Shown one piece after another: positions 2,101-53,619 of a DNA stretch of 64,000 nucleotides. The stretch is from Hypanus sabinus (Eukaryota). The notes beneath the pieces were generated by a model. That model saw nothing but the letters and a program-made list of their open reading frames with translations. It was not told the DNA's origin and searched no databases. The stretch's first letter is position 1. Each line of letters starts with the position of its first letter. The DNA lies in assembly GCF_030144855.1 (NCBI RefSeq), contig NC_082739.1, positions 13,826,001 to 13,890,000 of the forward strand, written 5' to 3'. Both the position numbers and the translations under genes were made by a program.

Positions 2101-2399
2101 AGGGCGGTGAGAGTGTGGAACTGGTAGATTTCATATCAAATAAATATTTCTCAGCTATGGAAAAGCTCATAAAAACTAAGGAATTAAGGGGAATGAATAG
2201 TAGTGATGTCTTGGAGTGTATCCACTTTATAAAAGAGGTGCTGCTCATCCATAAGGTATTGTGATTATCAACAGCATTGGAAACATACTTTACACAACAG
2301 AATATATATAACTTCATGGCCTGGCATTCTCTTGCTCTACTTTTACTGTCAAGTCAGATAAAAAAAAATCACAAACATAAACATAAAACTACGATCTGG

Positions 2400-3004
2400 T
2401 AGGCAGCCATTGATCCCAGGGGATGATGGGTTTGTGCCTCTGGTGGACTGTGTCCTCTCCAGGGCACAAGTCTGGGTGGGAAGATTTGAAGAACCGGCTG
2501 TTGCCCATGCAGTGGGTCTCCGCTCTCCACGTCACTGATGTAGTCCAAGGGAAGGGCAAATGCCGATACAGCTTGGCACCAGTGTCGTTGCAGAGGTTGC
2601 CAGAGTGAAGTTGTAAACAACATCAAACAGCCTTAGGGACCCTGGCTCCAGATTTCTTCCTTGGGGTTTACTCCTGAAGCCTTTCTCATGGGGGTGGGGG
2701 GGTCCGGCCGCAAGGCAGCGGAGGTTTAAAATCAGAGTTTCCCTTCTCCTAGGTGTGCTGCCGTCCAAGGGTGACGAGCCCCACCTGTCCAAAGCAACTG
2801 GTTTTGGGGGGCCAGTGGTCCGCCTTTACCCCTTCTCTTGTCAGTAGAAACAATTTTGATGGGCCTAGTAGCTAAGCCACATGGGAAGGCTAAGAGTTGG
2901 ACTTTGTTGTCAGAGGCTGTTAGAGTCACATGCTATTTGGAGCACTTCATAGGTAGTGGGAGCTTATCTCCACTACCACCCTGGCTATGACAATCTTAGA
3001 AACC
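2400..3004 (-). mobile_element. Young ~600-bp non-autonomous retroposon (probably RTE-derived)
   Basis: A near-identical second copy lies at 53014-53619 and a diverged relative at ~9370-10015. The family assignment is an inference from end motifs. Confidence 0.7.
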
Positions 3005-9369: not shown

Positions 9370-10015
9370 GTAAGGCCCTCTGTTGGTCACGGTCGACCAT
9401 GGATGTTATGTTCGAGCTGTCTACATCAAAGTAAATACACAAGCCAGGGCAGTACGATATGGAGAACAAGCTGTTGCCCAGGCAGCAAGTTCCACCTCTC
9501 CACACTGGTGATGAATCCAAAGGAACAACAGAGACCAATACAGTTTGGCACCGGTGGCATTGCGGGAGTTGTCAGTCAGCATTGAATTCAACTTATGTAG
9601 TTGAATCTGGAGCCTGGGTACTCCTGCTCCAGATTTTTCCTTGTGGTTTATTCCCAAAGCCTTCCCCATGAGTGGGTATAGTCGCAAGGCAGCGGAGGTT
9701 TGAAATCAGAGTTTTCCTTCTCCTAGATGAGCTGCCAACCATGTGTGGTGAACTACATATACCTGTCTGGACACGTCCCCTGCTGACTGCTCCTGTGGCT
9801 CCTCCCACAGACCCCGGCACAAAGGCGATTGAGGCCTGAGCCCGGCCTCTCAGTCTCCAGGATGTAGTATGGTGGTCACTCACTGCTTGTTCCTTCTTCC
9901 AGTCAATAAAAGCCGATATCTCGCCTTTACGTCTCAGAGTGAGTTATTGACTGATGAGCTCCATCAGTGACTGGTTTTAAGGCACCAGTAACCCCGGCTA
10001 TGACAGCCTTAGAAA
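9370..10015 (-). mobile_element. Older relative of the 600-bp retroposon, carrying a nested LTR
   Basis: Shares CTCCAGATTT..CCTTG.GGTTTA..CC..AAGCCTT and AAGGCAGCGGAGGTTT.AAATCAGAGTTT with 2645-2750. Confidence 0.65.
9744..9950 (+). mobile_element. Second copy of the 212-bp LTR family, 3'-clipped, nested in an RTE-like repeat
   Basis: Reverse-complement match to 46226-46437 (TGTGGTGAACTA...CAATAAAAGCCGATATCTCGCCT...GAGTTATTGA). Confidence 0.8.
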
Positions 10016-23645: not shown

Positions 23646-24759
23646 TTGCATGTTCCCTCCAGCCACCAGTCCCTGTTCCTCCACTGGGGGGGCTTCAGGC
23701 CCCTTCACACTCAGGTGAGACTGAAGCATATTGACTCAGCTAGTGCACAGGAGTACAACAGCAAAGTCTCCTGTGTCCTTGGGTAGGGTTAGGGTTATGG
23801 TCAGGTGTGCTGGGAGGGGCAGTAGTTAACTGCCCATCCAGACTACATCACAACCATTGTGCTTATCAGGTCCAAGTTAAAGGCTCTATTTTTGGACAAT
23901 GTTACCAATCACCATTTTCCAATATTACACAGACATGGAGCAATGCATTATTTATTATTACCATTGTAGTATTTGTTATTGTATATGTGTACTGCTTACA
24001 CGGTGAACATCACACAAGTGAGGAATTTCATTGCACGCTGCTGTATATGACAATAAACTGACTTGAATCTGGAGTGAGCATGTACATCATCATGTAATGA
24101 GTGTGCAATCATCTGAAAAGCAATACCTCAACCTTTGGACACCTGTCATAGTTGGTGGACTGTACCATATTGCAGACAAGCCTGAAGACTCAAAGTAAGT
24201 AAAGGATTCATTGTTTAGGAGTATCAATCCAGTTAGCAGAGAATTGCCCAAAGAGAGTTGCCTCTGGGTAATAATATTCCAGGTTTCCTCAAATGCTCCT
24301 GAGGGAGAACAGCAAAGATTATCATTCTGAGAGAGACAAAACCAAAAATGGCACCAATTCAACAAGGATGTCTCAGACTAAGGAGGGTCTGACTTCAAAA
24401 CCTGAAGAGATGCAAAATCATTGAGAAATGGTCATTTCTAGGGTTCACTCCAGATAATGTTAATTACCAATGGTATAACACTGAAGGAAATGATGTTATA
24501 TGAGTGAATTTCTTAAAGTATTTACAAAAATGTAAGTGTACAAAGGGGCAATTTCCATTATGAAAATAAAACATGCAAATGTGATGGATCAAAAGGTAAT
24601 TCAAAATTTTATTGTACACATTTCAGAAATTCACACTCAAAAATGCAATAATATTAATATCTCCCTCTTTGCAAAAAATAAATAGAGTGGGGAGAGTTAC
24701 ATTTAAGCATTACTTTATCTGTGCACCAAGAGGACAATGAAGTAAATTCTACTTCTCAA

Positions 24760-26997
24760 TTAGTTCTGCAGATTCTGCCAGAAGTTGCCCCATAGAGCGG
24801 TGAGCTGGGTCTGAAGATCCTGCTGAACATTGGCTCCATTCAGGACGAGTCTCTCCTGCATCTCCTTCACATTCTGACTGATGATTTGTTTCAGCTGCTC
24901 AGTGTAGGGAGCCAGGTTCTGATGGAACTCCTCGATTCTCTGGTTAACGTTGGTGTTGAAATTTTCAATGAATGGGCCCAGGTTCTGGTCCACGTTCTCG
25001 TTAAGTTTAGCTTTCAGTTCGATGATGTAAGGGTTCAGCCTTTGGTTCAGAACATCCACGTGCTCATTGACTTTTGCCTGGAGCTTCTCGGCATATGGCT
25101 CAACCATCTGGGACATTTCTCCAATTTGTTGGTTCATCTTGATCTGGACATCCTTGGCATAGGGTGCCAAGCTATTGCGAAGCTCCTGGACATCCTCATT
25201 AAACCTGGAGCGGAATTCTTCAGCTTTGGCAGCCACGTTCTGCCTGAGGGTGTCCATGTTTTCATCAATCTTCACCTGGAGCTCTTCAGCGTAGGGAGTC
25301 AGGACTTCCCTGAGGTTCTCTGTGCTCACTTCCAGTCTGGCCTGTAGCTCTTCAGTAAAAGGAGTCAACTTCTGCCGAAGTTCCTCTGCATTCTTACGCA
25401 GCTGTTGGCCCAGGTCTTCAGCAAAAGGGGTCAACTTCTGATGAAATTCTTCAATGTTCCTGCTGATCTTCTGATGAACTCCATCCGCAAAGGGAGCAAG
25501 TTTCTCCCTCAGGTCTTCCAGTTGTTCTCTTATCTGCTGGCGAAGGCTCTCAATGTCTACTGTCATCCGCTCATGAAGACCATCTGTGTAAGGAGCCAAC
25601 TTCTGTCGGAGATCCTCAGCATAGTCATTGACCGTCTGCAGATTATCCTGAATAAGGTGACTGGAAAAGAAGAGACAGTTGTTTCTTATACTCGTTACAG
25701 GAAAGAGATACGTTTAGACAGAGCTCTGTACAAGGCTGGTTCTGAGACAAATGTACACTGGAAAGGAGAGCTTATAAAGGACATTTTGGATCACAAGATC
25801 TTCTAAGGGAACTACAGGTGTTCATTGCAGTGGGAGGATGTGATTCACACAATAGTTTTCATTCATTCTAGTATTACCTATTTGTTAAGTTTTGCTGGGT
25901 ATCTGTTCCACCAGCCCTGATGAGTTTACCCCTTCTTTTATTCTTTATTCTCATTCTTGTTTGTTTTTAAACTTGCTGAGGAACCTTCACTTTAATATTA
26001 TAGCACAGTGCTGCTGGTGAAACTAATCCACAAAACCAGGACTATTAATCTGAAATAATGAATTCAGCTCTTACTGAAAAACTTTTAGATTAGAGTAGAT
26101 ACATAATACATCTGAACTTCAAAATATCACTATTGTTACTGCAGATTGACTGGGTCATCATAGAAGTCCATAACGTCCTTAGTGAAGGAAATTTGTGTCT
26201 ATAGTTGAGACTTCACTGGCATCTTAAACTGGTCAGTTAACAAATAGAGCTGGACAATAATGTTGGTGAGGATCAGATTCTATAAAGAAATTGCAAAGAA
26301 ACTCTCGGACTGTTGTAATGCTCCAGTCCTAAGACATCCCTGGCCAGTTCCTCGATCAATACAAGTCGCTAATCTATTCTTAGTACCCATTAAAACGCCA
26401 AATGCTCACTTGAGTTGCTGGCCGATTTCTGAGCTCTGGATCAGCTCGACGCTATCCTGGGCTTCTTCAGTCATTTGGCTGATGTAATTCCAGAAGGCAT
26501 CTCGAACCTGATCTCCATTGATCTCAGCCCGACAGCCTATGGGAAGGAAAATTTGAGGTGATCAGGGTAGGAAACAGGAGGAAAGTTCCACAGATCTACT
26601 GTTCATTCACCCGATCAAAAACTTCAAAACTTCACAGTGTATCTTGGTGATCAGTCCTTTTTGGGGCTGTACTGTAGCTGGATGAGTCATAGAGTAAAAT
26701 CCCAGGTCTTTGAATATTTGTAATGTGGACTTAGAACAAACCCAGTAAGGGCACCCAGGAGCCGATGTGTGGAAGAATGGACAAAGCAAGGGGCTCCAGA
26801 ATTCAGATAAGAGCTAATATCAGGTGTTCATCAGTGAAGTGAAGATAGTGAGTCCAAGTTCAATCAAGAACCTTTGAAGATTGGAAGTGGCAATAAAATC
26901 CCAGTCATCGTCCCAGAATAAGAGAATTGGAATATTTGAATCTCATACCTGTGAGAAAGGCAGCAGCCAGAAGCAGGAGGTTTGCTCTGGGAAACAT
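24760..26997 (-). CDS. apoa4: Apolipoprotein A-IV-like, copy 1 (type A), 358 aa; coding exons 26997-26949, 26536-26410, 25660-24760
   Basis: Coding exons of 49/127/901 bp with GT-AG ends and phases 1 and 2. Signal peptide MFPRANLLLLAAAFLTGCRA. The mature N-terminus EINGDQVRDAFWNYISQMTEEAQDSVELIQSSEIGQQLN aligns ungapped to human APOA4 [39 protein letters not shown]. Proline-punctuated 22-mer amphipathic repeats are present. Non-coding exon 1 lies at ~27845-27812, the exon 2 acceptor at 27058, and the polyA signal at 24608-24613. Confidence 0.93.
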
Positions 26998-27811
26998 GGT
27001 GGTGTTCTCAAATGATATTGAGTATGGCAGATTATTTCTGTGTCCCTTTGCAGTCAATCTATGGGAAAAAAATAATGATCGGAGTTAGTGCCGGGTTCAA
27101 ACCCACATGGAAAATCTACCCGAGTATTCCTGCCCCCTTCTGAACTCTATTTGTTACACAAGGAGTCAGCGTGCAGCCCTTTGAACCGGTTCTGTTATTG
27201 AGATCAAAGCTGGTCTTTGGGCTCACCACCATTTTCCTGCACTGTCTCAATATGCCTCGGTGCCCATGGCAGCCAGAAATATTTCCACATCTGCTTTGAA
27301 TGAGCCCAGTGACTGAGCCCGCGAGACCCCCAAAGACCTACTGACCTCTAGTTTACAGCATGCCTTCTCTTTGAAGTCCTTAATGCCGCACCCCTTATTC
27401 TGAAACTCTGACCCCACCCCAGGATCTAAACTCTTCAGCCAGAGAAAGGATCCTCCATACATCTAGCCTGTTATAACCTGTCAGTTATAAAAGCATAAAT
27501 CACAGGAGCAGAATTGGTCCTTTTGGCCCATCGAATCCGCTCGTCTGTTCAATCAAAACTGATTTATTTTCTCTCTCAGCCCCATTCTCTTACATTCTCC
27601 CCATAAACTTTGATGCCCTTACTAATGAAGAAGATATCAAACTCACTTTTAATTATACCTTGTAACAATACAGAAGAACAGAAAGCTGTTCTTTAGTTCC
27701 TATGCCTTGACCAATTGCCTGATCAGAGAAGCTGACCCTAGAGAGCATTTACAAGGATAAGCAGGCAAGCTCGCTGGGTTGGAGGAAATTGAGCCTCAGG
27801 GCTCTTCTCAC

Positions 27812-28040
27812 CTGTTTCTGCTGTGCTTCTCCAGGAGATCTGTGTCGCAGCCCACAGACGCTCACTCTATATAAGGGCACCTTATCAGCAGCTGATGACA
27901 AAGTTGGTAGATTTGTGTTTGACTCGTGGACTTGCCCTGAAAACCAAGAGAATGTGGAGCTTCCAACAAGAATGTTACTCTGAACTGCTGCCTTCACCAT
28001 AAATCCAACTCAACCTGAAAGGGCAAATTCCATTCAAGAT
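27812..28040 (-). promoter_or_regulatory. Promoter and non-coding exon 1 of apoA-IV copy 1 (repeated at 34775-35003 and 42899-43127)
   Basis: TATATAG box (27867-27874), TGATAA GATA site, HNF4/DR1-like AGGGCAAGTCCA and AGGGCAAATTCCA (28020-28032), and donor CAG|gtgag at 27812. The block is conserved in the otherwise diverged copy-4 promoter. Confidence 0.75.
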
Positions 28041-28403
28041 GAATTTTTCAGTCCAAAGGCCATGATTTATTACCGCTGTAACATTAGATCACTCTATGGA
28101 CTTAGAGTGAGGGATTTTGAATGACAGGGAGAGTCTGTCATCATTGGCAGCAGGTTAGGTAACCTGGGGACATTGATTCGAGGTCATCAGCAAAGGAAGC
28201 CGATGGGAGATGTAGGAATAATGAGTTGCCGGCGCCTGGAATGAATCTTGCGGAGCCGATGGAAAGAAACTTCCCCTTGCCTCCGCAAATAGATCGAGAG
28301 GAAGCAAATTGTAAAGCCTTAGGGAAAGTGTGATGATTGGAATTAATCCCTTAGACAGAAATGCTGGGCCCAACTAATTCCTGTCTGAGATAAAAGAATC
28401 TAT

Positions 28404-29337
28404 TGTTACGTACCCCGTAACTGGGTGTCTGACCAGCAAAGATAGAAGAATCCATTGGAGTCTGGTGGTACCAAACTAAAGGTGTTTATTAGTAAACTAC
28501 ACAATACAATATCAAAAATGCAAATATACATATAAAACTAGTTAGCAGTAATAAACCTAAAACTGTAGGTATAGTAATAATCAATAATAAACAAGCTCTA
28601 TCAATGTCTAGGGGTAAATGAATTGTCATAGGAAGGTATAGAGTTCAGTTCATAAATGCTGAGGTGGTTATGGTTGTTGTGTTGAAATCGTTGGAGAGAG
28701 AGAGAGAGAGCGAGCGAGATGTAACAGCTGTGGCAGGCAAACCTTTTGTGGCTTTCTTAATCCGTCGTGTAGTTGTGGCCATTCAGTTATGACCCCTCTG
28801 GTCTTCAGCTAGACTGTTCTTCTGTGGTGGACTCGTCACTCTGGCATGAGTGGACCCACACACAAGTCCCCACCGGCCCTGCTGTAGCACTGTGAGCTTT
28901 ACTGACTGATCTCCTGGTTCGGTCTCCGAAGCCCCCACCTTTCTGTGGGTTCCCAACACTCAGTCAGTGTCCACTGGTGTGTCTGAAGGGTGTCTCTCCA
29001 GACCTGTCTTTTATCCCCACTCATGGGGTCTCAGCTATCCATCAACTCTGAATGACCGTGTCCAACAAATCAGCCCACTCCTGCTATCTCCTGAGGAATG
29101 TTAACGAGCAAAGTAAAGTCCTTGTAGCGGAAGGTAAATAATCCAGGAAGAGTCATAATACAGTAAATCAACAGTCTCTCTCCCCCTCTTATCTGTAGCA
29201 AATGTTCTTGCCTGGGCTTTATCTCTCTCTCTCATGAGAAGCGTAGCAACAGCAATAGTTCGTAGTTCTCAGGAGGGGGTTGGGAATGGTTAGCTCTGCA
29301 CCCCATTGACCATCAGGTCTGTTCATCACTCATAACA
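28404..29337 (-). mobile_element. Solo LTR (~0.93 kb), unit 1
   Basis: TGTTA...TAACA termini, 4-bp TSD CTAT on both sides, and AATAAA on the minus strand. Confidence 0.85.
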
Positions 29338-30599
29338 CTATGATTTTGTACCGTTTTACCTGCTAAGGCCTTGAAGTCCTGCAGATGAATGTATTCACAC
29401 AAGACAATCACTGTTACTTAAGCCTGTGACCTCATGGTCACAAAGTCACAGAGAAAGACAGCACAGAAATAGGCCTTTAGCCTATGGAGTCCTTGACAGT
29501 CTACATTAATACTAGATTAACTGCATTTTCAAATTCTTCCCACATTCCATTCAAATCCCCCCATATTCTAACTGTCTAAAGGCAATTTACAGTGGCAATG
29601 GGCTTGTGCCCTTTCTACCTTCAGCTCATGTGTCTGAGTCATTGCTCGTGTCATGGACTTGGCTCTGGGTAACTTGCCTGAAAAATTATTCCGTTCTCTG
29701 GTGCTCAAAGTTGAACACAACTTAAAGCCGATGATGTGTTTAGGGCGGGAACCCATGACTCTGATATAGCAGTAGATATGGAAGGTTCCTCTGACATGGA
29801 AGTAGAAGCTCCAAGTTCAAACCAGGCAAAGTACTGAGCGCAAAGCCAAAGTTAGAAGCCTGAAGATAGAAGTAGAGGCTCATAATAGTCATGGGGGTCC
29901 GAAGGAATTATGAAGACACGGGTCACCGGGGTGAGAAATCTGTGCAAGTCTGGAAGTCGAGGTCCGAAGGTCAAACCCATGATCATCGTCCTGTGAAGGC
30001 TGAAGTTGGAGGCCTGATGCCTGCAAGTCTGAGAATCCAGAGACAAGGCCTGGAGGCCCAAGGGTGAACTACTCTGGGTTTGGAGGCGTGTCAGGGTGTG
30101 TGTACGGGTGAGATGGATGGAAAGTGGATTTGTTTTGTTGCTAACTGTCTCTTCTAATTTGCTGTTGTTGTTATTTATTGGATCTTTGTGGGCCTGCAAT
30201 GTTTAAGATGGTATGTGTAGAAACACTTGCGAGCTGCCTCAGCACACCCTTGGGTTGTGTTGGTTGTTAAATGTGATGAATAAATCTGAATCTGCTCCTG
30301 TCTCTCTTGAAATGATTTCATTTCTGCTCCACTGGATTATCTGCATCCTTAAACTCTCTGTTTGCACTTACTCCAATTCCATTGACTCTCAATCTCTGAT
30401 CTTTTAATTGCACCTAGACACATTATTCCTTGCACTGAGCATAAACTCTCATTCCCACTGTCCCGTCCCTGATCGTAGTGATCTTCAGACTTTCAACAAG
30501 CTTGTAATAAACAGCTGGCATGAATGGGTAAGTGTTCATCAGAGCTTCGGCATTAGAAATCTGCAGTCACCTGCACAGAACGTATGTTTATAATATCAG

Positions 30600-31147
30600 G
30601 TACCCAGACATGCTGTGTATATTTGTGTTTGGGTCTGTCTCTAAAAAAGGATGTGCTGGCTTTTGGAGAGGGTCCTGAGCAGGTTCACAAGATTGATCCT
30701 GGGAATGAAAGTGCTAACATATGAGGAGCGTTTGATGGCTCTGAGCCTGTACTCACTGGAGTTCAGAAGAATGAGGGGGAATCTGACTGAAGTCTAACAA
30801 ATATTGCAAGGCTTAAAGGGAGTGCTTATGAAGAGGATGGTTCCAATTGTCAAAGACTCTGGAACCATAGGGCACAGACTCAGAATCGAAGGACATCCCT
30901 TTAGAACAGAGATGAGGAGGAATATCTTCAGCCTAATCTGTGGAATTCATTACCACATGCAGGTATGGAGGCCAAATAATTGGGAATATTTAAAGTAGAG
31001 GTAGGTCAGTTCTTTATTAGTAGCTGTGTCAAAAGTTTCAGGGAGGAGGCAGGAGAATCAGGTTGAGAAGGAAAATAAAATCTTGATTGAATGGTGAAGC
31101 AGATTTGATGTGCCAAATGGCCTAATTCTGTTCCTATGTCTTATGGA
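30600..31147 (+). mobile_element. CR1 3' fragment (duplicated at ~45687-46450; only the tail remains in unit 2)
   Basis: GHRLRIEGHPFRTEMRRN motif plus a CR1 tail. Confidence 0.8.
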
Positions 31148-31727
31148 TCTTGCACTCGAGACATTTAAGTTAGCAGGTTCAGTTGCCTGCTGCAATGGCC
31201 TGTCCAATAATACATACAGGATTGAAGTTATGTTAGAATCTTTGGAACATTGATTGAATTACTGATATTGAATATGGTCTATAGACATCATGAAGGCTAT
31301 CCAGTCTGCAGAAGGAGCAGATTTCCATCAAAGATCTGGCAGGTGTGATTTCAATAAACATCTCCAAAAATTCCACCGTACCATTGCTTGTCGGAGATAT
31401 TTGCAGTAATTGGGGAAACGTGTGAGAAAATGGGATGTAGTGGGTTGGACAATCAGTGCGTATTTGATGTGATGAATTGCTTTGTTCTGCGCAGTATTAT
31501 TTACATAGTTCTATATTTTTGCCCGTGTACTAAAGGAAGGAAAACTTCTCAGATATTAAAGTTTTATTGCAGATATTTTATAGTTCACACTCCAAAATTT
31601 CAGTCATTGATTTTAATACTTTTCTCTCGAAAAACAATAAATACTTTCAGCATATTACCATTTGAGAAAGTAAAAGGACCCCTTAGTCTTGGCACACAGT
31701 TTGACAGAGCCACATTCTATTTCTGAA

Positions 31728-33960
31728 TTAGTTCTGCAGATGCTGCCAGAAGTTGCCCCATAGAGCGGTGAGCTGGGTCTGAAGATCCTGCTGAACATTG
31801 GCTCCATTCAGGACGAGTCTCTCCTGCATCTCCTTCACATTCTGACTGATGATTTGTTTCAGCTGCTCAGTGTAGGGAGCCAGGTTCTGATGGAACTCCT
31901 CGATTCTCTGGTTAACGTTGGTGTTGAAATTTTCAATGAATGGGCCCAGGTTCTGGTCCACGTTCTCGTTAAGTTTAGCTTTCAGTTCGACGATGTAAGG
32001 GTTCAGCCTTTGGTTCAGAACATCCACGTGCTCATTGACTTTTGCCTGGAGCTTCTCGGCATATGGCTCAACCATCTGGGACATTTCTCCAATTTGTTGG
32101 TTCATCTTGATCTGGACATCCTTGGCATAGGGTGCCAAGCTATTGCGAAGCTCCTGGACATTCTCATTAAACCTGGAGCGGAATTCTTCAGCTTTGGCAG
32201 CCACGTTCTGCCTGAGGGTGTCCATGTTTTCATCAATCTTCACCTGGAGCTCTTCAGCGTAGGGAGTCAGGACTTCCCTGAGGTTCTCTGTGCTCACTTC
32301 CAGTCTGGCCTGTAGCTCTTCAGTAAAAGGAGTCAACTTCTGCCGAAGTTCCTCTGCATTCTTACGCAGCTGTTGGCCCAGGTCTTCAGCAAAAGGGGTC
32401 AACTTCTGATGAAATTCTTCAATGTTCCTGCTGATCTTCTGATGAACTCCATCCGCAAAGGGAGCAAGTTTCTCCCTCAGGTCTTCCAGTTGTTCTCTTA
32501 TCTGCTGGCGAAGGCTCTCAATGTCTACTGTCATCCGCTCATGAAGACCATCTGTGTAAGGAGCCAACTTCTGTCGGAGATCCTCAGCATAGTCATTGAC
32601 CGTCTGCAGATTATCCTGAATAAGGTGACTGGAAAAGAAGAGACAGTTGTTTCTTATACTCGTTACAGGAAAGAGATACGTTTAGACAGAGCTCTGTACA
32701 AGGCTGGTTCTGAGACAAATGTACACTGGAAAGGAGAGCTTATAAAGGACATTTTGGATCACAAGATCTTCTAAGGGAACTACAGGTGTTCATTGCAGTG
32801 GGAGGATGTGATTCACACAATAGTTTTCATTCATTCTAGTATTACCTATTTGTTAAGTTTTGCTGGGTATCTGTTCCACCAGCCCTGATGAGTTTACCAC
32901 TTCTTTTATTCTTTATTCTCATTCTTGTTTGTTTTTAAACTTGCTGAGGAACCTTCACTTTAATATTATAGCACAGTGCTGCTGGTGAAACTAATCCACA
33001 AAACCAGGACTATTAATCTGAAATAATGAATTCAGCTCCTACTGAAAAACTTTTAGATTAGAGTAGATACATAATACATCTGAACTTCAAAATATCACTA
33101 TTGTTACTGCAGATTGACTGGGTCATCATAGAAGTCCATAACTTCCTTAGTGAAGGAAATTTGTGTCTATAGTTGAGACTTCACTGGCATCTTAAACTGG
33201 TCAGTTAACAAATAGAGCTGGACAATAATGTTGGTGAGGATCAGATTCTATAAAGTAATTGCAAAGAAACTCTCGGACTGTTGTAATGCTCCAGTCCTAA
33301 GACATCCCTGGCCAGTTCCTCGATCAATACGCTAATCTATTCTTAGTACCCATTAAAACGCCAAATGCTCACTTGAGTTGCTGGCCGATTTCTGAGCTCT
33401 GGATCAGCTCGACGCTATCCTGGGCTTCTTCAGTCATTTGGCTGATGTAATTCCAGAAGGCATCTCGAACCTGATCTCCATTGATCTCAGCCCGACAGCC
33501 TATGGGAAGGAAAATTTGAGGTGATCAGGGTAGGAAACAGGAGGAAAGTTCCACAGATCTACTGTTCATTCACCCGATCAAAAACTTCAAAACTTCACAG
33601 TGTATCTTGGTGATCAGTCCTTTTTGGGGCTGTACTGTAGCTGGATGAGTCATAGAGTAAAATCCCAGGTCTTTGAATATTTGTAATGTGGACTTAGAAC
33701 AAACCCAGTAAGGGCACCCAGGAGCCGATGTGTGGAAGAATGGACAAAGCAAGGGGCTCCAGAATTCAGATAAGAGCTAATATCAGGTGTTCATCAGTGA
33801 AGTGAAGATAGTGAGTCCAAGTTCAATCAAGAACCTTTGAAGATTGGAAGTGGCAATAAAATCCCAGTCATCGTCCCAGAATAAGAGAATTGGAATATTT
33901 GAATCTCATACCTGTGAGAAAGGCAGCAGCCAGAAGCAGGAGGTTTGCTCTGGGAAACAT
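31728..33960 (-). CDS. apoa4: Apolipoprotein A-IV-like, copy 2 (A/B hybrid), 358 aa; coding exons 33960-33912, 33499-33373, 32628-31728
   Basis: Same exon structure as copy 1 and near-identical from the promoter to the stop codon. The 3' UTR is of copy-4 type. PolyA signal at 31563-31568. Confidence 0.92.
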
Positions 33961-35366
33961 GGTGGTGTTCTCAAATGATATTGAGTATGGCAGATTATTT
34001 CTGTGTCCCTTTGCAGTCAATCTATGGGAAAAAAATAATGATCGGAGTTAGTGCCGGGTTCAAACCCACATGGAAAATCTACCCGAGTATTCCTGCCCCC
34101 TTCTGAACTCTATTTGTTACACAAGGAGTCAGCGTGCAGCCCTTTGAACCGGTTCTGTTATTGAGATCAAAGCTGGTCTTTGGGCTCACCACCATTTTCC
34201 TGCACTGTCTCAATATGCCTCGGTGCCCATGGCAGCCAGAAATATTTCCACATCTGCTTTGAATGAGCCCAGTGACTGAGCCCGCGAGACCCCCAAAGAC
34301 CTACTGACCTCTAGTTTACAGCATGCCTTCTCTTTGAAGTCCTTAATGCCGCACCCCTTATTCTGAAACTCTGACCCCACCCCAGGATCTAAACTCTTCA
34401 GCCAGAGAAAGGATCCTCCATACATCTAGCCTGTTATAACCTGTCAGTTATAAAAGCATAAATCACAGGAGCAGAATTGGTCCTTTTGGCCCATCGAATC
34501 CGCTCGTCTGTTCAATCAAAACTGATTTATTTTCTCTCTCAGCCCCATTCTCTTACATTCTCCCCATAAACTTTGATGCCCTTACTAATGAAGAAGATAT
34601 CAAACTCACTTTTAATTATACCTTGTAACAATACAGAAGAACAGAAAGCTGTTCTTTAGTTCCTATGCCTTGACCAATTGCCTGATCAGAGAAGCTGACC
34701 CTAGAGAGCATTTACAAGGATAAGCAGGCAAGCTCGCTGGGTTGGAGGAAATTGAGCCTCAGGGCTCTTCTCACCTGTTTCTGCTGTGCTTCTCCAGGAG
34801 ATCTGTGTCGCAGCCCACAGACGCTCACTCTATATAAGGGCACCTTATCAGCAGCTGATGACAAAGTTGGTAGATTTGTGTTTGACTCGTGGACTTGCCC
34901 TGAAAACCAAGAGAATGTGGAGCTTCCAACAAGAATGTTACTCTGAACTGCTGCCTTCACCATAAATCCAACTCAACCTGAGAGGGCAAATTCCATTCAA
35001 GATGAATTTTTCAGTCCAAAGGCCATGATTTATTACCGCTGTAACATTAGATCACTCTATGGACTTAGAGTGAGGGATTTTGAATGACAGGGAGAGTCTG
35101 TCATCATTGGCAGCAGGTTAGGTAACCTGGGGACATTGATTCGAGGTCATCAGCAAAGGAAGCCGATGGGAGATGTAGGAATAATGAGTTGCCGGCGCCT
35201 GGAATGAATCTTGCGGAGCCGATGGAAAGAAACTTCCCCTTGCCTCCGCAAATAGATCGAGAGGAAGCAAATTGTAAAGCCTTAGGGAAAGTGTGATGAT
35301 TGGAATTAATCCCTTAGACAGAAATGCTGGGCCCAACTAATTCCTGTCTGAGATAAAAGAATCTAT

Positions 35367-36180
35367 TGTTACGTACCCCGTAACTGGGTGTCTGACCAGC
35401 AAAGATAGAAGAATCCATTGGAGTCTGGTGGTACCAAACTAAAGGTGTTTATTAGTAAACTACACAATACAATATCAAAAATGCAAATATACATATAAAA
35501 CTAGTTAGCAGTAATAAACCTAAAACTGTAGGTATAGTAATAATCAATAATAAACAAGCTCTATCAATGTCTAGGGGTAAATGAATTGTCATAGGAAGGT
35601 ATAGAGTTCAGTTCATAAATGCTGAGGTGGTTATGGTTGTTGTGTTGAAATCGTTGGAGAGAGAGAGAGAGAGCGAGCGAGATGTAACAGCTGTGGCAGG
35701 CAAACCTTTTGTGGCTTTCTTAATCCGTCGTGTAGTTGTGGCCATTCAGTTATGACCCCTCTGGTCTTCAGCTAGACTGTTCTTCTGTGGTGGACTCGTC
35801 ACTCTGGCATGAGTGGACCCACACACAAGTCCCCACCGGCCCTGCTGTAGCACTGTGAGCTTTACTGACTGATCTCCTGGTTCGGTCTCCGAAGCCCCCA
35901 CCTTTCTGTGGGTTCCCAACACTCAGTCAGTGTCCACTGGTGTGTCTGAAGGGTGTCTCTCCAGACCTGTCTTTTATCCCCACTCACGGGGTCTCAGCTA
36001 TCCATCAACTCTGAATGACCGTGTCCATCAAATCAGGCCACTCCTGCAATCTCCTGAGGAATGTTAACAAGCAAAGTAAAGTCCTTGTAGCGGAAGGTAA
36101 ATAATCCAGGAAGAGTCATAATACAGTAAATCAACAGTCTCTCACCCCTCTTATCTGTAGCAAATGTTCTTGCCTGGGCT

Positions 36181-36233
<53 letters not shown>

Positions 36234-36336
36234 GAGCAGCGTAGCAACAGCAATAGTTCGTAGTTCTCAGGAGGGGGGTTGGGAATGGTTAGCTCTGCAC
36301 CCCATTGACCATCAGGTCTGTTCATCACTCATAACA
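35367..36336 (-). mobile_element. Solo LTR, unit 2 (expanded CT microsatellite ~36184-36231)
   Basis: Same termini and CTAT TSD as 28404-29337. Confidence 0.85.
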
Positions 36337-37154
36337 CTATGATTTTGTACCGTTTTACCTGCTAAGGCCTTGAAGTCCTGCAGATGAATGTATTCACACA
36401 AGACAATCACTGTTACTTAAGCCTGCGACCTCATGGTCACAAAGTCACAGAGAAAGACAGCACAGAAATAGGCCTTTAGCCTATGGAGTCCTTGACAGTC
36501 TACATTAATACTAGATTAACTGCATTTTCAAATTCTTCCCACATTCCATTCAAATCCCCCCATATTCTAACTGTCTAAAGGCAATTTACAGTGGCAATGG
36601 GCTTGTGCCCTTTCTACCTTCAGCTCATGTGTCTGAGTCATTGCTCGTGTCATGGACTTGGCTCTGGGTAACTTGCCTGAAGAATTATTCCATTCTCTGG
36701 TGCTCAAAGTTGAACACAACTTAAAGCCAATGATGTATTTAGGGCGGGAACCCATGACGTTGATATAGCAGTAGATATGGAAGGTTCCTCTGACATGGAA
36801 GTAGAAGCTCCAAGTTCAAACCCGGCAAAGTACTGAGCGCAAAGCCAAAGTTAGAAGCCTGAAGATAGAAGTAGAGGCTCAAAATAGTCATGGGGGTCCG
36901 AAGGAATTATGAAGACACGGGTCACCGGGGTGAGAAATCTGTGCAAGTCTGGAAGTCGAGGTCCGAAGGTCAAACCCATGATCATCGTCCTGTGAAGGCT
37001 GAAGTTGGAGGCCTGATGCCTGCAAGTCTGAGAATCCAGAGACAAGGCCTGGAGGCCCAAGGGTGAACTACTCTGGGTTTGGAGGCGTGTCAAGGTGTGT
37101 GAACGGGTGAGATGGATGGAAAGGGGATGTGTGTGTGTGTGTGTGTGTGTGTGT

Positions 37155-49180: not shown

Positions 49181-49554
49181 GATGGATTTCACACACTAAG
49201 TACAATTCCTGCTCTCTCTTCAAAAAATCTGTGAAAATAAACAAAAAGATTTAGATCAATATTCAACACCTATTCTTTCATTGTTATTCATTTTAAGTGG
49301 AACATTTTCTCACTGATAAATGAGAACCCTGACTTGTATAAATAGCATCCCGTGTATTCTTGTCTCCCATTGCATACTGTAGCAGACAATTGTACCCTGC
49401 CACGCAATTGAAAATAGAAAGCTGAATTCTTGACACACTACATTTGACTTTATGCAAAGACATTTGCTGAACAGATGCACAGCTAAGTGTGCATACACTG
49501 TGTCCCCTTAATTAGACCCCATCGCATAGGTGGTGTATCCAGGGCTTCTCTCAC

Positions 49555-49770
49555 CTTCCTCTTCTCTTGAAGCTGTGTCTCAGACCACAGACCTGCCTGT
49601 TTTTAAAGGCACTTTATCAGCAGTTGATGACCAGTTAGTCTGCTTCAGTTGGTGGACTTTCCCTGACACCAAGACAACGTGGAGCTTCCAACCACACTGT
49701 CACTCTGAACTGTGATGTGTTTCCTTCAATATGTCTCCATCTCAACTGACAGGGGCAAACTCCAATCAAA
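49555..49770 (-). promoter_or_regulatory. Promoter and non-coding exon 1 of apoA-IV copy 4
   Basis: TTTAAAAA box (~49600-49607), TGATAA, AGGGAAAGTCCA and GGGGCAAACTCCA (49752-49764). Colinear with the type-A promoter. Confidence 0.7.
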
Positions 49771-52008: not shown

Positions 52009-52747
52009 CAGTCGGCCCTCCTTATCCGCAAGGGATTGGTTCCGGGACCCCTCGCGGATACCAAAAAACACGAATGCTCAAGTCCCTCATTTAACCTGTT
52101 TCAGTGCGGTGGACTTTAGGACCCAGCGGAGCTCTGAATCCACAGTGTTTCTGTTCATGAAAATAATCACGATCACGATTGAAAATAAAGTGAAAATAAT
52201 AAAGTGATCGGAAAGAGGTGAAACATCATCGGTCACTGGAAAAGCGTTAGGCTACAGTCGGTCAATGATCGGAACAATTATAAAGGACAAAGTGAGAAAG
52301 GCCCTGCCCTGATGAAAGCTACAATTATTACTAAGCAATGCAGTGGTTTAATTATTGAATACATATGTTTTTTAAGTGTCTTATATGCATAGAAAGGTAA
52401 AATATATATTTTTTTCTAAGACAAACATTTGACTAACTGACGCTAAATAATACTGTATGTAGCTGTTCTAACGTACTTAGTAAGAGAACTTCTGATTTTT
52501 TCGATCCNNNNNNNNNNNNNNNNNNNNNNNNNNNNNNNNNNNNNNNNNNNNNNNNNNNNNNNNNNNNNNNNNNNNNNNNNNNNNNNNNNNNNNNNNNNNN
52601 NNNNNNNNNNNNNNNNNNNNNNNNNNNNNNNNNNNNNNNNNNNNNNNNNNNNNNNNNNNNNNNNGCTGGAAGAGCATTTCCAGGTTTTCTCAATTCGTGT
52701 TTGTTGAATTCGCACATGCCGAACTCACGGATAAGGAGGGCCAGCTG
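52009..52747. mobile_element. Pogo/Tigger-like non-autonomous DNA transposon spanning an assembly gap
   Basis: TA-CAGTCGGCCCTCCTTATCCG ... CGGATAAGGAGGGCCAGCTG-TA terminal inverted repeats. Confidence 0.8.
52508..52664. other. Assembly gap (157 N)
   Basis: Run of N. Confidence 1.
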
Positions 52748-53013: not shown

Positions 53014-53619
53014 AGTAGGCAGCCGTTAATCCCAGGGGATGATGGGTTTGTGCCTCTGGTGGACTGTGTCCTCTCCAGGGCACAAGTCTGGGTGGGAAGA
53101 TTTGAAGAACCGGCTGTTGCCCATGCAGTGGGTCTCCCCTCTCCACGTCACTGATGTAGTCCAAGGGAAGGGCAAGCGCCGATACAGCTTGGCACCAGTG
53201 TCGTTGCAGAGGTTGCCAGAGTGAAGTTGTAAACAACATCAAACAGCCTTAGGGACCCCCGGCTCCAGATTTCTTCCTTGGGGTTTACTCCTGAAGCCTT
53301 TCCCATGGGTGGGTCCGGCCTCAAGGCAGCGGAGGTTTAAAATCAGAGTTTCCCTTCTCCTAGGTGTGCTGCCGTCCAAGGGTGACGAGCCCCACCTGCC
53401 CAAAGCAACTGGTTTTGAGGGGCCAGTGGTCCGCCTTTACCCCTTCTCTTGTCGGTAGAAACAATTTTGATGGGCCTAGTAGCTAAGCCACATGGGAAGG
53501 CCAAGAGTTGGACTTTGTTGTCAGAGGCTGTTAGAGTCACATGCTATTTGGAGCACTTCATAGGTAGTGGGAGCTTATCCCCACTACCATCCCCATAAAT
53601 ATGACAACCTTAGGAAACA
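53014..53619 (-). mobile_element. Second copy of the ~600-bp non-autonomous retroposon
   Basis: Almost identical to 2400-3004, with unrelated flanks. Confidence 0.7.

Follow-up and report, generated by a model that had tools for sequence, protein, structure and literature searches.

Haemoglobin anti-Lepore chromosomes, which carry delta, a beta-delta hybrid, and beta, are products of unequal crossing-over. The human red/green opsin array and the RCCX region (CYP21-C4-TNX) gain and lose copies, and copy-number polymorphism and hybrid genes are documented in populations for both. Multiplied apoA-IV genes have been described in zebrafish, where the paralogs apoA-IVa, b.1, b.2, and b.3 comprise three very similar members and one divergent member (PMC4348566). 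For cartilaginous fish, apoA-I and apoA-IV are the recorded apolipoproteins, and arrays are not mentioned (PMC6854765). Here we describe an array of four apoA-IV genes from the stingray Hypanus sabinus, arranged head-to-tail on the minus strand at 24.6–49.7 kb of a 64,000-nucleotide window (RefSeq assembly GCF_030144855.1, contig NC_082739.1, positions 13,826,001–13,890,000; all positions below are those of the window). The array was analyzed as one assembled haplotype of one individual. Its two inner genes combine the 5′ part of one outer gene with the 3′ end of the other, and the origin of these two hybrids by unequal crossing-over is well supported. Our literature searches turned up no account of an apoA-IV array with hybrid genes.

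The layout is that of a duplication-hybrid. The outer parents lie on the same strand, each with its own 5′ part and its own 3′ untranslated region (UTR), and each hybrid takes its 5′ part from the downstream parent and its 3′ part from the upstream one, followed by a copy of the spacer. As in the anti-Lepore case, intact parents stand outside, hybrid sequence of downstream-5′/upstream-3′ composition stands inside, the spacer is duplicated, and the junction falls in a tract of high identity. The stingray array differs in having two hybrids rather than one, with ages blurred by later homogenization, and in placing the junction at the very end of the coding sequence (CDS), so that the swap mainly touches the 3′ UTR. 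We know of no reciprocal deletion (Lepore-type) allele of this array. With the opsin and RCCX loci it shares near-identical head-to-tail units, hybrids formed by non-allelic homologous recombination, and conversion between units; unlike those loci, it has been seen in a single haplotype. The zebrafish paralogs likewise represent a lineage-specific multiplication of apoA-IV in fish, but they arose in an independent teleost expansion, and their description includes no hybrid structure, breakpoints, or recent exchange (PMC4348566).

Structure of the array and its hybrid genes

Self-BLAST of the window delineated three near-identical units of ~7–8 kb (24746–31713, 31714–39837, and 39838–47044) and a partial fourth copy (47045–48022) that shares only ~1 kb. 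All long open reading frames (ORFs) of the repeat lie on the minus strand and span 279–303 residues each. The only run of Ns in the window (52508–52664) falls outside the array. Gene models were built from weak protein matches together with alignments of the two parental gene types, hereafter A and B, and give four exons per copy. Exon 1 is untranslated and follows a conserved promoter; the start codon and a hydrophobic leader lie in exon 2 (49 bp); exon 3 measures 127 bp in A-type genes and 112 bp in B-type genes; and the last exon, located in all four copies by self-BLAST and alignments, has 901 bp. The introns are GT-AG, and every reading frame is intact, with one stop codon that is terminal.

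Copy 1, the A-type parent, spans 24590–27870 and encodes 358 amino acids. Its exon 1 lies at ~27870–27813 and its CDS at 26997–26949, 26536–26410, and 25660–24760; the gene ends in an A-type 3′ UTR with AATAAA at 24613–24608, and the C-terminus of the product is WQNLQN. This model agrees with the public H. sabinus annotation, which places here a 358-residue minus-strand gene with a span of 2238 bp and a start 3865 bp beyond the plus-strand gene; the distances are exact. Copy 4, the B-type parent, spans 46880–49610 and encodes 353 amino acids, with exon 1 at ~49610–49556 and CDS at 49180–49132, 48714–48603, and 47959–47059. It has its own putative signal peptide, an N-terminus with a five-residue deletion, a B-type 3′ UTR, and the C-terminus WQHLQN. 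Between the parents lie the two hybrids, each encoding 358 amino acids on the minus strand: copy 2 at 31545–34833 (CDS 33960–33912, 33499–33373, and 32628–31728) and copy 3 at 39669–42957 (CDS 42084–42036, 41623–41497, and 40752–39852). Copy 2 joins an A-type 5′ part to a B-type 3′ UTR with AATAAA at 31568–31563, and its product ends in WQHLQN. The AATAAA signal is present in both A- and B-type 3′ UTRs, 147 and 160 nt past the stop, respectively. An earlier note on this DNA had read copy 1 as A-type, copy 4 as B-type, and copies 2 and 3 as A at the 5′ end and B at the 3′ end, an assignment borne out by self-BLAST and alignments.

The two halves of the hybrids are shared with different parents. 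Promoter, exons 1–3, and introns are common to copies 1–3 at 99.7–100% identity, and the 3′ UTR plus ~600 bp of flank are common to copies 2, 3, and 4. Within the last exon, copies 2 and 3 show the A state at every difference between copies 1 and 4 from position 1 to 811, except at 467, and the B state from position 887 onward, including the N-to-H change that distinguishes WQNLQN from WQHLQN. With the sawfish gene described below as reference, position 467 is a change private to copy 1 and position 638 is derived and common to copies 2 and 3. This site pattern is far beyond chance. The diagnostic sites confine the A-to-B switch to a 76-bp interval (exon-4 positions 811–887), which corresponds to 31742–31818 in copy 2 and 39866–39942 in copy 3, with counterparts at 24774–24850 in copy 1 and 47073–47149 in copy 4, all on the minus strand. 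The earlier note had located the switch at the very end of the last exon from the two C-terminal motifs, and the interval falls there.

The B-type sequence of the hybrids continues well beyond the coding region. By unit alignment, the B-type 3′ UTR and downstream flank occupy 31134–31727 at copy 2, 39258–39851 at copy 3, and 46438–47058 at copy 4 (minus strand). The flanks of copies 2 and 3 differ from each other at three positions, and the flank of copy 4 differs from both by ~14 single-nucleotide polymorphisms (SNPs) in 592 bp (1.4–3.5% by sub-segment) plus a 27-bp insertion/deletion (indel). The 3′ UTRs of copies 2 and 3 are identical and lie 3.5% from that of copy 4. Past the UTR, B-type sequence runs on into the spacer seen after copy 4 and reaches the A-type promoter that comes next. 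Neither self-BLAST nor unit alignment found the A-type downstream flank (~22–24.7 kb) repeated inside the array. Read in the direction of the genes, the order is B gene, B flank, spacer, A body with B flank, spacer, A body with B flank, spacer, A body, and A flank. The spacer repeated with each unit, the continuous B flank, and the absence of an internal A flank uphold the claim of the earlier note that unequal crossover left the parents outside and the hybrids inside. Here and below, divergence counts come from a pairwise aligner run on segments, and SNPs and indels of the units from a three-way unit alignment.

At the protein level, little has changed in the hybrids. Exons 2 and 3 of copy 2 are identical to those of copy 1, and exon 4 carries three differences. 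Copies 2 and 3 encode the same protein, which differs from that of copy 1 by D215N, I272V, and N355H, of which N355H is the sole B-derived residue. The hybrid proteins are essentially A-type. In the copy 4 protein, about half of the first 60 residues (leader and N-terminus) differ from copy 1, along with 7–8 residues encoded by the last exon.

Comparison of the two parents reveals where an exchange could have taken place. The 5′ part of copy 4 is 66–70% identical to A-type sequence in the promoter/exon 1 and exon 3 regions, with ~24% mismatches in alignable columns and many gaps, as expected for a sequence that is recognizably homologous to the A type but apparently old. The A-type 3′ UTR of copy 1 differs from the B-type 3′ UTR by ~26%, again with many gaps. 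The last exons of A and B, by contrast, differ at only 12–13 of 901 bases (1.3–1.4%). This homogenized tract extends over 24746–25722 (47045–48022 in copy 4; minus strand) and takes in the final 62 bp of intron 3, all of exon 4, and ~14 bp past the stop. Megablast aligns A and B across this tract only, at 97%, and the sequence on either side is 23–27% different. The identity fades gradually over the 62 bp of intron 3 and falls abruptly ~14 bp past the stop. The hybrid junction sits within this tract, the only long near-identical one between A and B, which is the homology that let unequal exchange happen.

Family placement, outgroup, and neighboring loci

The exon-4 products match PF01442 (Apolipoprotein A1/A4/E domain), with 245.5 bits (E 4e-73) for copy 4 and 227.8 bits (E 1e-67) for copy 1 within a range of 228–246 bits over the repeat ORFs (cut-off 90). 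Against solved structures, human apoA-IV scores best (E 2.7e-56), with residues 6–283 running collinear to 61–337; other solved relatives are well behind, with 4e-28 for the best apoA-I and 4.5e-09 for the best apoE. The named relatives in a representative library include the apoA-IV proteins of alligator, echidna, and sawshark. ApoA-V-like proteins also match, at 27–30% identity; the family placement was made by search scores. The gene structure is that of the family, with a 49-bp exon for the hydrophobic N-terminus, a short exon 3, and a 901-bp last exon with repeats. As to the conserved APOA1/C3/A4/A5 neighborhood, the H. sabinus and Hemitrygon akajei records place a porphobilinogen deaminase gene upstream, and the Heterodontus locus contains an Apo-CIII-like gene. 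HMBS maps to human 11q23.3, as does APOA4. Neither apoA-I nor apoA-V was identified within the window.

Word-indexed protein searches retrieved only relatives of ≤37% identity; they missed the 361-residue sawfish protein (83% identical) even when its own last exon was the query and gave no stingray apoA-IV either, so a blank in them is no evidence that an ortholog is absent. An exhaustive search of representative proteins reached a top identity of 42%.

The sawfish Pristis pectinata provides the outgroup. Its locus is collinear with positions 1–28175 of the window at 72–81% nucleotide identity and ends in the A promoter. Like copy 1, the sawfish gene (minus strand, 361 amino acids) stands tail-to-tail with a plus-strand apolipoprotein gene. 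Exon 2 is 88% identical to the A type at the amino acid level, with no match reported to the B type, and exon 3 is 83% identical to the A type and 44% to the B type. The promoter is closer to A (80.7%) than to B (71.7%), and the 3′ UTR and flank align to A-type sequence at 80–82% with few gaps and to B-type sequence at 70–75% with many. The sawfish protein ends in WQNLQN, and its gene has the A state at exon-4 position 887. From this comparison, a gene that is A-type at both its 5′ and 3′ ends is the conserved form at the syntenic position. Since the sawfish gene is A-type at both ends and encodes WQNLQN, the A-5′/B-3′ combination would be derived at this position. The split between A and B probably predates the split between sawfish and stingray, as A resembles the sawfish gene more than it resembles B; this dating assumes similar rates. 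A gene of 358–361 residues tail-to-tail with a plus-strand apolipoprotein gene occurs in H. sabinus, H. akajei, Pristis, and Mustelus asterias (from gene lists for all but Pristis).

In the stingray window, the tail-to-tail partner of copy 1 is a second, divergent apolipoprotein gene at 16300–20895 on the plus strand, the last exon of which has 63% protein identity to an "apolipoprotein A-IV-like" protein of P. pectinata. Its exons are 97.6–100% identical to H. sabinus protein, where single mismatches may fall at split codons, and 96–100% identical to H. akajei protein over four exons (97.0% for the last exon). The NCBI models of this gene in Hypanus and Hemitrygon encode 600–684 amino acids over gene spans of ~70 kb and seem to be fused to an unrelated upstream gene, orthologs of which elsewhere encode 330–480 amino acids with no Pfam domain.

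Another elasmobranch also carries related genes in tandem. In the basking shark Cetorhinus maximus (GCA_964194155.1), at least three genes with 306-residue PF01442 products follow one another with a period of ~11 kb, and one identical protein appears under four accession numbers. These records, which are gene lists and proteins alone, suggest an independent recent amplification of an apoA-IV-like gene. The likeness to the stingray lies in tandem recent amplification; the basking shark protein is only 35–36% identical to the stingray protein overall.

The apolipoprotein cluster of H. sabinus is flanked by a 610-bp direct repeat of 95% identity (2399–3003 and 53015–53618), with its copies ~50 kb apart. 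The repeat probably belongs to a young transposable element family and could be a recombination substrate in its own right. A Pfam scan of nine ORFs flanking the array and an Rfam scan of 24–50 kb gave no match.

Spacer mosaic and the origin of the array

The spacer upstream of copy 1 (29065–31133), termed alpha, has no differences over 2,069 bp from the one upstream of copy 3 (44152–46220). The spacer upstream of copy 2 (36028–39168), termed beta, is distinct: its first part (36028–37132) lies 1.8% from alpha over 1.07 kb, and the remaining ~2 kb (37133–39168) has no homology to the 915-bp alpha segment at 30134–31047 or to the rest of the window. The beta spacer also contains two microsatellites, (TC)24 at 36184–36231 and (TG)18 at the breakpoint (37128–37164). 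Its non-homologous segment may have come from an insertion/deletion pair, template switching, or a divergent allele. A private insertion of ~216 bp (46222–46437) marks the spacer between copies 4 and 3, where a 6-bp target-site duplication (CTATGT) distinguishes the filled site from the empty site at 31133/31134. The insertion is a short interspersed element, 86% similar in inverted orientation to 9740–9950, and has no Rfam match. It stands exactly where the 100%-identical alpha block meets the 2.4%-diverged flank of copy 4, a position that would be consistent with an exchange tract halted by heterology.

A second block of complete identity covers the gene body, with 39625–44111 (copy 3) matching 31501–35987 (copy 2) over 4,487 bp. 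Along the unit alignment, 12 SNPs private to unit 1 (24752–29024) are followed by 19 private to unit 2 (29065–30130) with zero interleaving; by our own arithmetic, such perfect segregation would arise by chance in ~1 in 1.4e8 orderings. Non-interleaved SNPs of this kind are a signature of exchange between units. Because SNPs of units 1 and 2 never interleave, unit 3 is a clean mosaic, its gene being of the unit-2 type and its spacer of the unit-1 type. Divergence across the array falls into three layers. The oldest separates A from B outside exon 4 (~24–27%). The middle layer comprises exon 4 of copy 4 against the others (1.3–1.4%), the flank of copy 4 against that of the hybrids (~2.4%), and beta against alpha spacer (1.8%). 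The youngest comprises copy 1 against copies 2 and 3 (0.17–0.33%), together with the 100%-identical blocks.

We consider it likely that non-allelic homologous recombination produced the array as a young tandem expansion of apoA-IV, the hybrids being formed by unequal crossing-over and then reshaped by later exchange or conversion. The starting state would have been two old paralogs in the same orientation, B upstream and A downstream, ~4 kb apart. Gene conversion would have homogenized their last exons over a tract of ~960 bp to ~98.6% identity in genes that had otherwise diverged. The A last exon on one chromatid could then pair with the B last exon on the other, and exchange within the last 90 bp would place a B 3′ UTR behind the A gene body, duplicate the entire spacer from B to A, and leave the order B-hybrid-A. 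The second hybrid, ongoing homogenization, and the 100%-identical blocks would follow from continued unequal exchange and conversion among the ~7-kb units. The most economical staging would have an older first exchange, corresponding to the middle layer, then a very recent duplication, and finally conversion or inter-allelic exchange among units. The order of events, gene expression, and the relevance of dosage or of the 3′ UTR swap are matters that we infer from sequence.

Several observations weigh against this account. Divergence is uneven, in that the hybrids are 0.2–0.3% from A yet ~2.4% from the B flank, whereas exchange at a single time predicts equal values; extra conversion steps must therefore be assumed. 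Starting from an array of three genes, one unequal exchange cannot make the alpha-beta-alpha spacer order. We tried that history at every crossover position, and each gave alpha-alpha-beta or beta-alpha-alpha, never alpha-beta-alpha with identical copies 2 and 3. At least one further conversion or inter-allelic exchange is therefore needed, and a single haplotype is too little to reconstruct the exact sequence of events. For the putative age of the B gene and for an ancestral state of two genes, divergence is the only guide. Lastly, the 100%-identical blocks (4.5 kb and 2.1 kb) could also stem from assembly or polishing of a shorter array, and the array is known from an assembly alone.

This last point underlies the most serious competing explanation, in which the region holds fewer true genes (B-A or B-hybrid-A), one or two of the middle units represent haplotype copies or a wrongly threaded path through the repeat, and polishing created the identical blocks. 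Units that are 99.5–100% identical over ~7 kb and include two exactly identical blocks do permit alternative repeat paths, and a spacer order at odds with a single exchange is what such an error might leave. We nevertheless regard an assembly artefact as unlikely. The array is assembled without an internal gap, three A-type units are too many to come from two haplotypes of a single-copy unit, and the hybrid junction occurs in two units with different upstream spacers. The 45-Mb contig of the H. sabinus reference assembly may point to the use of long reads. Moreover, the units carry private marks, which include the transposable element insertion with its target-site duplication, the 2-kb replacement, the (TC)24 insertion, and the 12 SNPs plus a 5-bp indel (at 26362) in unit 1. 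Given these distinct structural marks, the units are not one sequence written three times.

Conversion without any exon crossover fares worse. On this explanation, duplication first made copies 2 and 3 A-type throughout, and B sequence subsequently replaced their 3′ ends. Gene conversion has clearly been at work in the locus, as the homogenized A/B exon 4 and the identical blocks between units attest, but conversion alone would have to account for B-type sequence that is unbroken through UTR, flank, and copy-4-type spacer to the next promoter, with the unit boundary falling at the exon junction. Units 2 and 3 retain no remnant of an A-type downstream flank, and the A and B 3′ UTRs, ~26% different and rich in gaps, are a poor substrate for a tract extending beyond the exon. 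We judge it improbable that conversion was the sole process.

That the A-5′/B-3′ form is ancestral and the outer copies are derived recombinants, an outcome that by the earlier note would refute its own reading, is logically possible from the four-copy pattern but has nothing specific in its favor and is very improbable, being largely refuted for the A position by the syntenic sawfish gene, which is A-type from its 5′ part through its 3′ UTR and flank.

Significance for apoA-IV in cartilaginous fish

The unequal-crossover origin of the hybrids thus stands as a clear new case of a well-known type of event. With a textbook mechanism and hybrid proteins that scarcely depart from the parent, it introduces no new principle. 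The earlier note had gone further and proposed that the shared exon acts as a recombination cassette that makes the locus an accordion, with a tripled dose of A-promoter-driven apoA-IV under B-type 3′ UTR control. The junction lies within the near-identical exon, and a plain two-step history does not accommodate the three divergence layers and the alpha-beta-alpha spacers. In the broadest reading, the locus would be a currently active accordion, apoA-IV copy number would vary between individual stingrays, and similar independent amplifications, such as the identical tandem copies of the basking shark, would occur across elasmobranchs, reflecting selection on apoA-IV dosage in animals that rely heavily on lipoproteins for lipid transport. 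The hybrids would also place a transcript from the A promoter under B-type 3′ UTR regulation. We hold this broader scenario to be doubtful, and put it forward tentatively.

The locus is of practical concern to annotators, as the units are so alike that regional copy number needs a check against reads and the models of the plus-strand neighbor seem to be fused upstream. The array also shows with unusual clarity how a tandem gene family grows: crossover took place in an exon homogenized by conversion, the junction is mapped to within 76 bp, and later exchanges are visible as identical blocks. If copy number varies within the species, the array would offer a natural apoA-IV dosage series in a cartilaginous fish.

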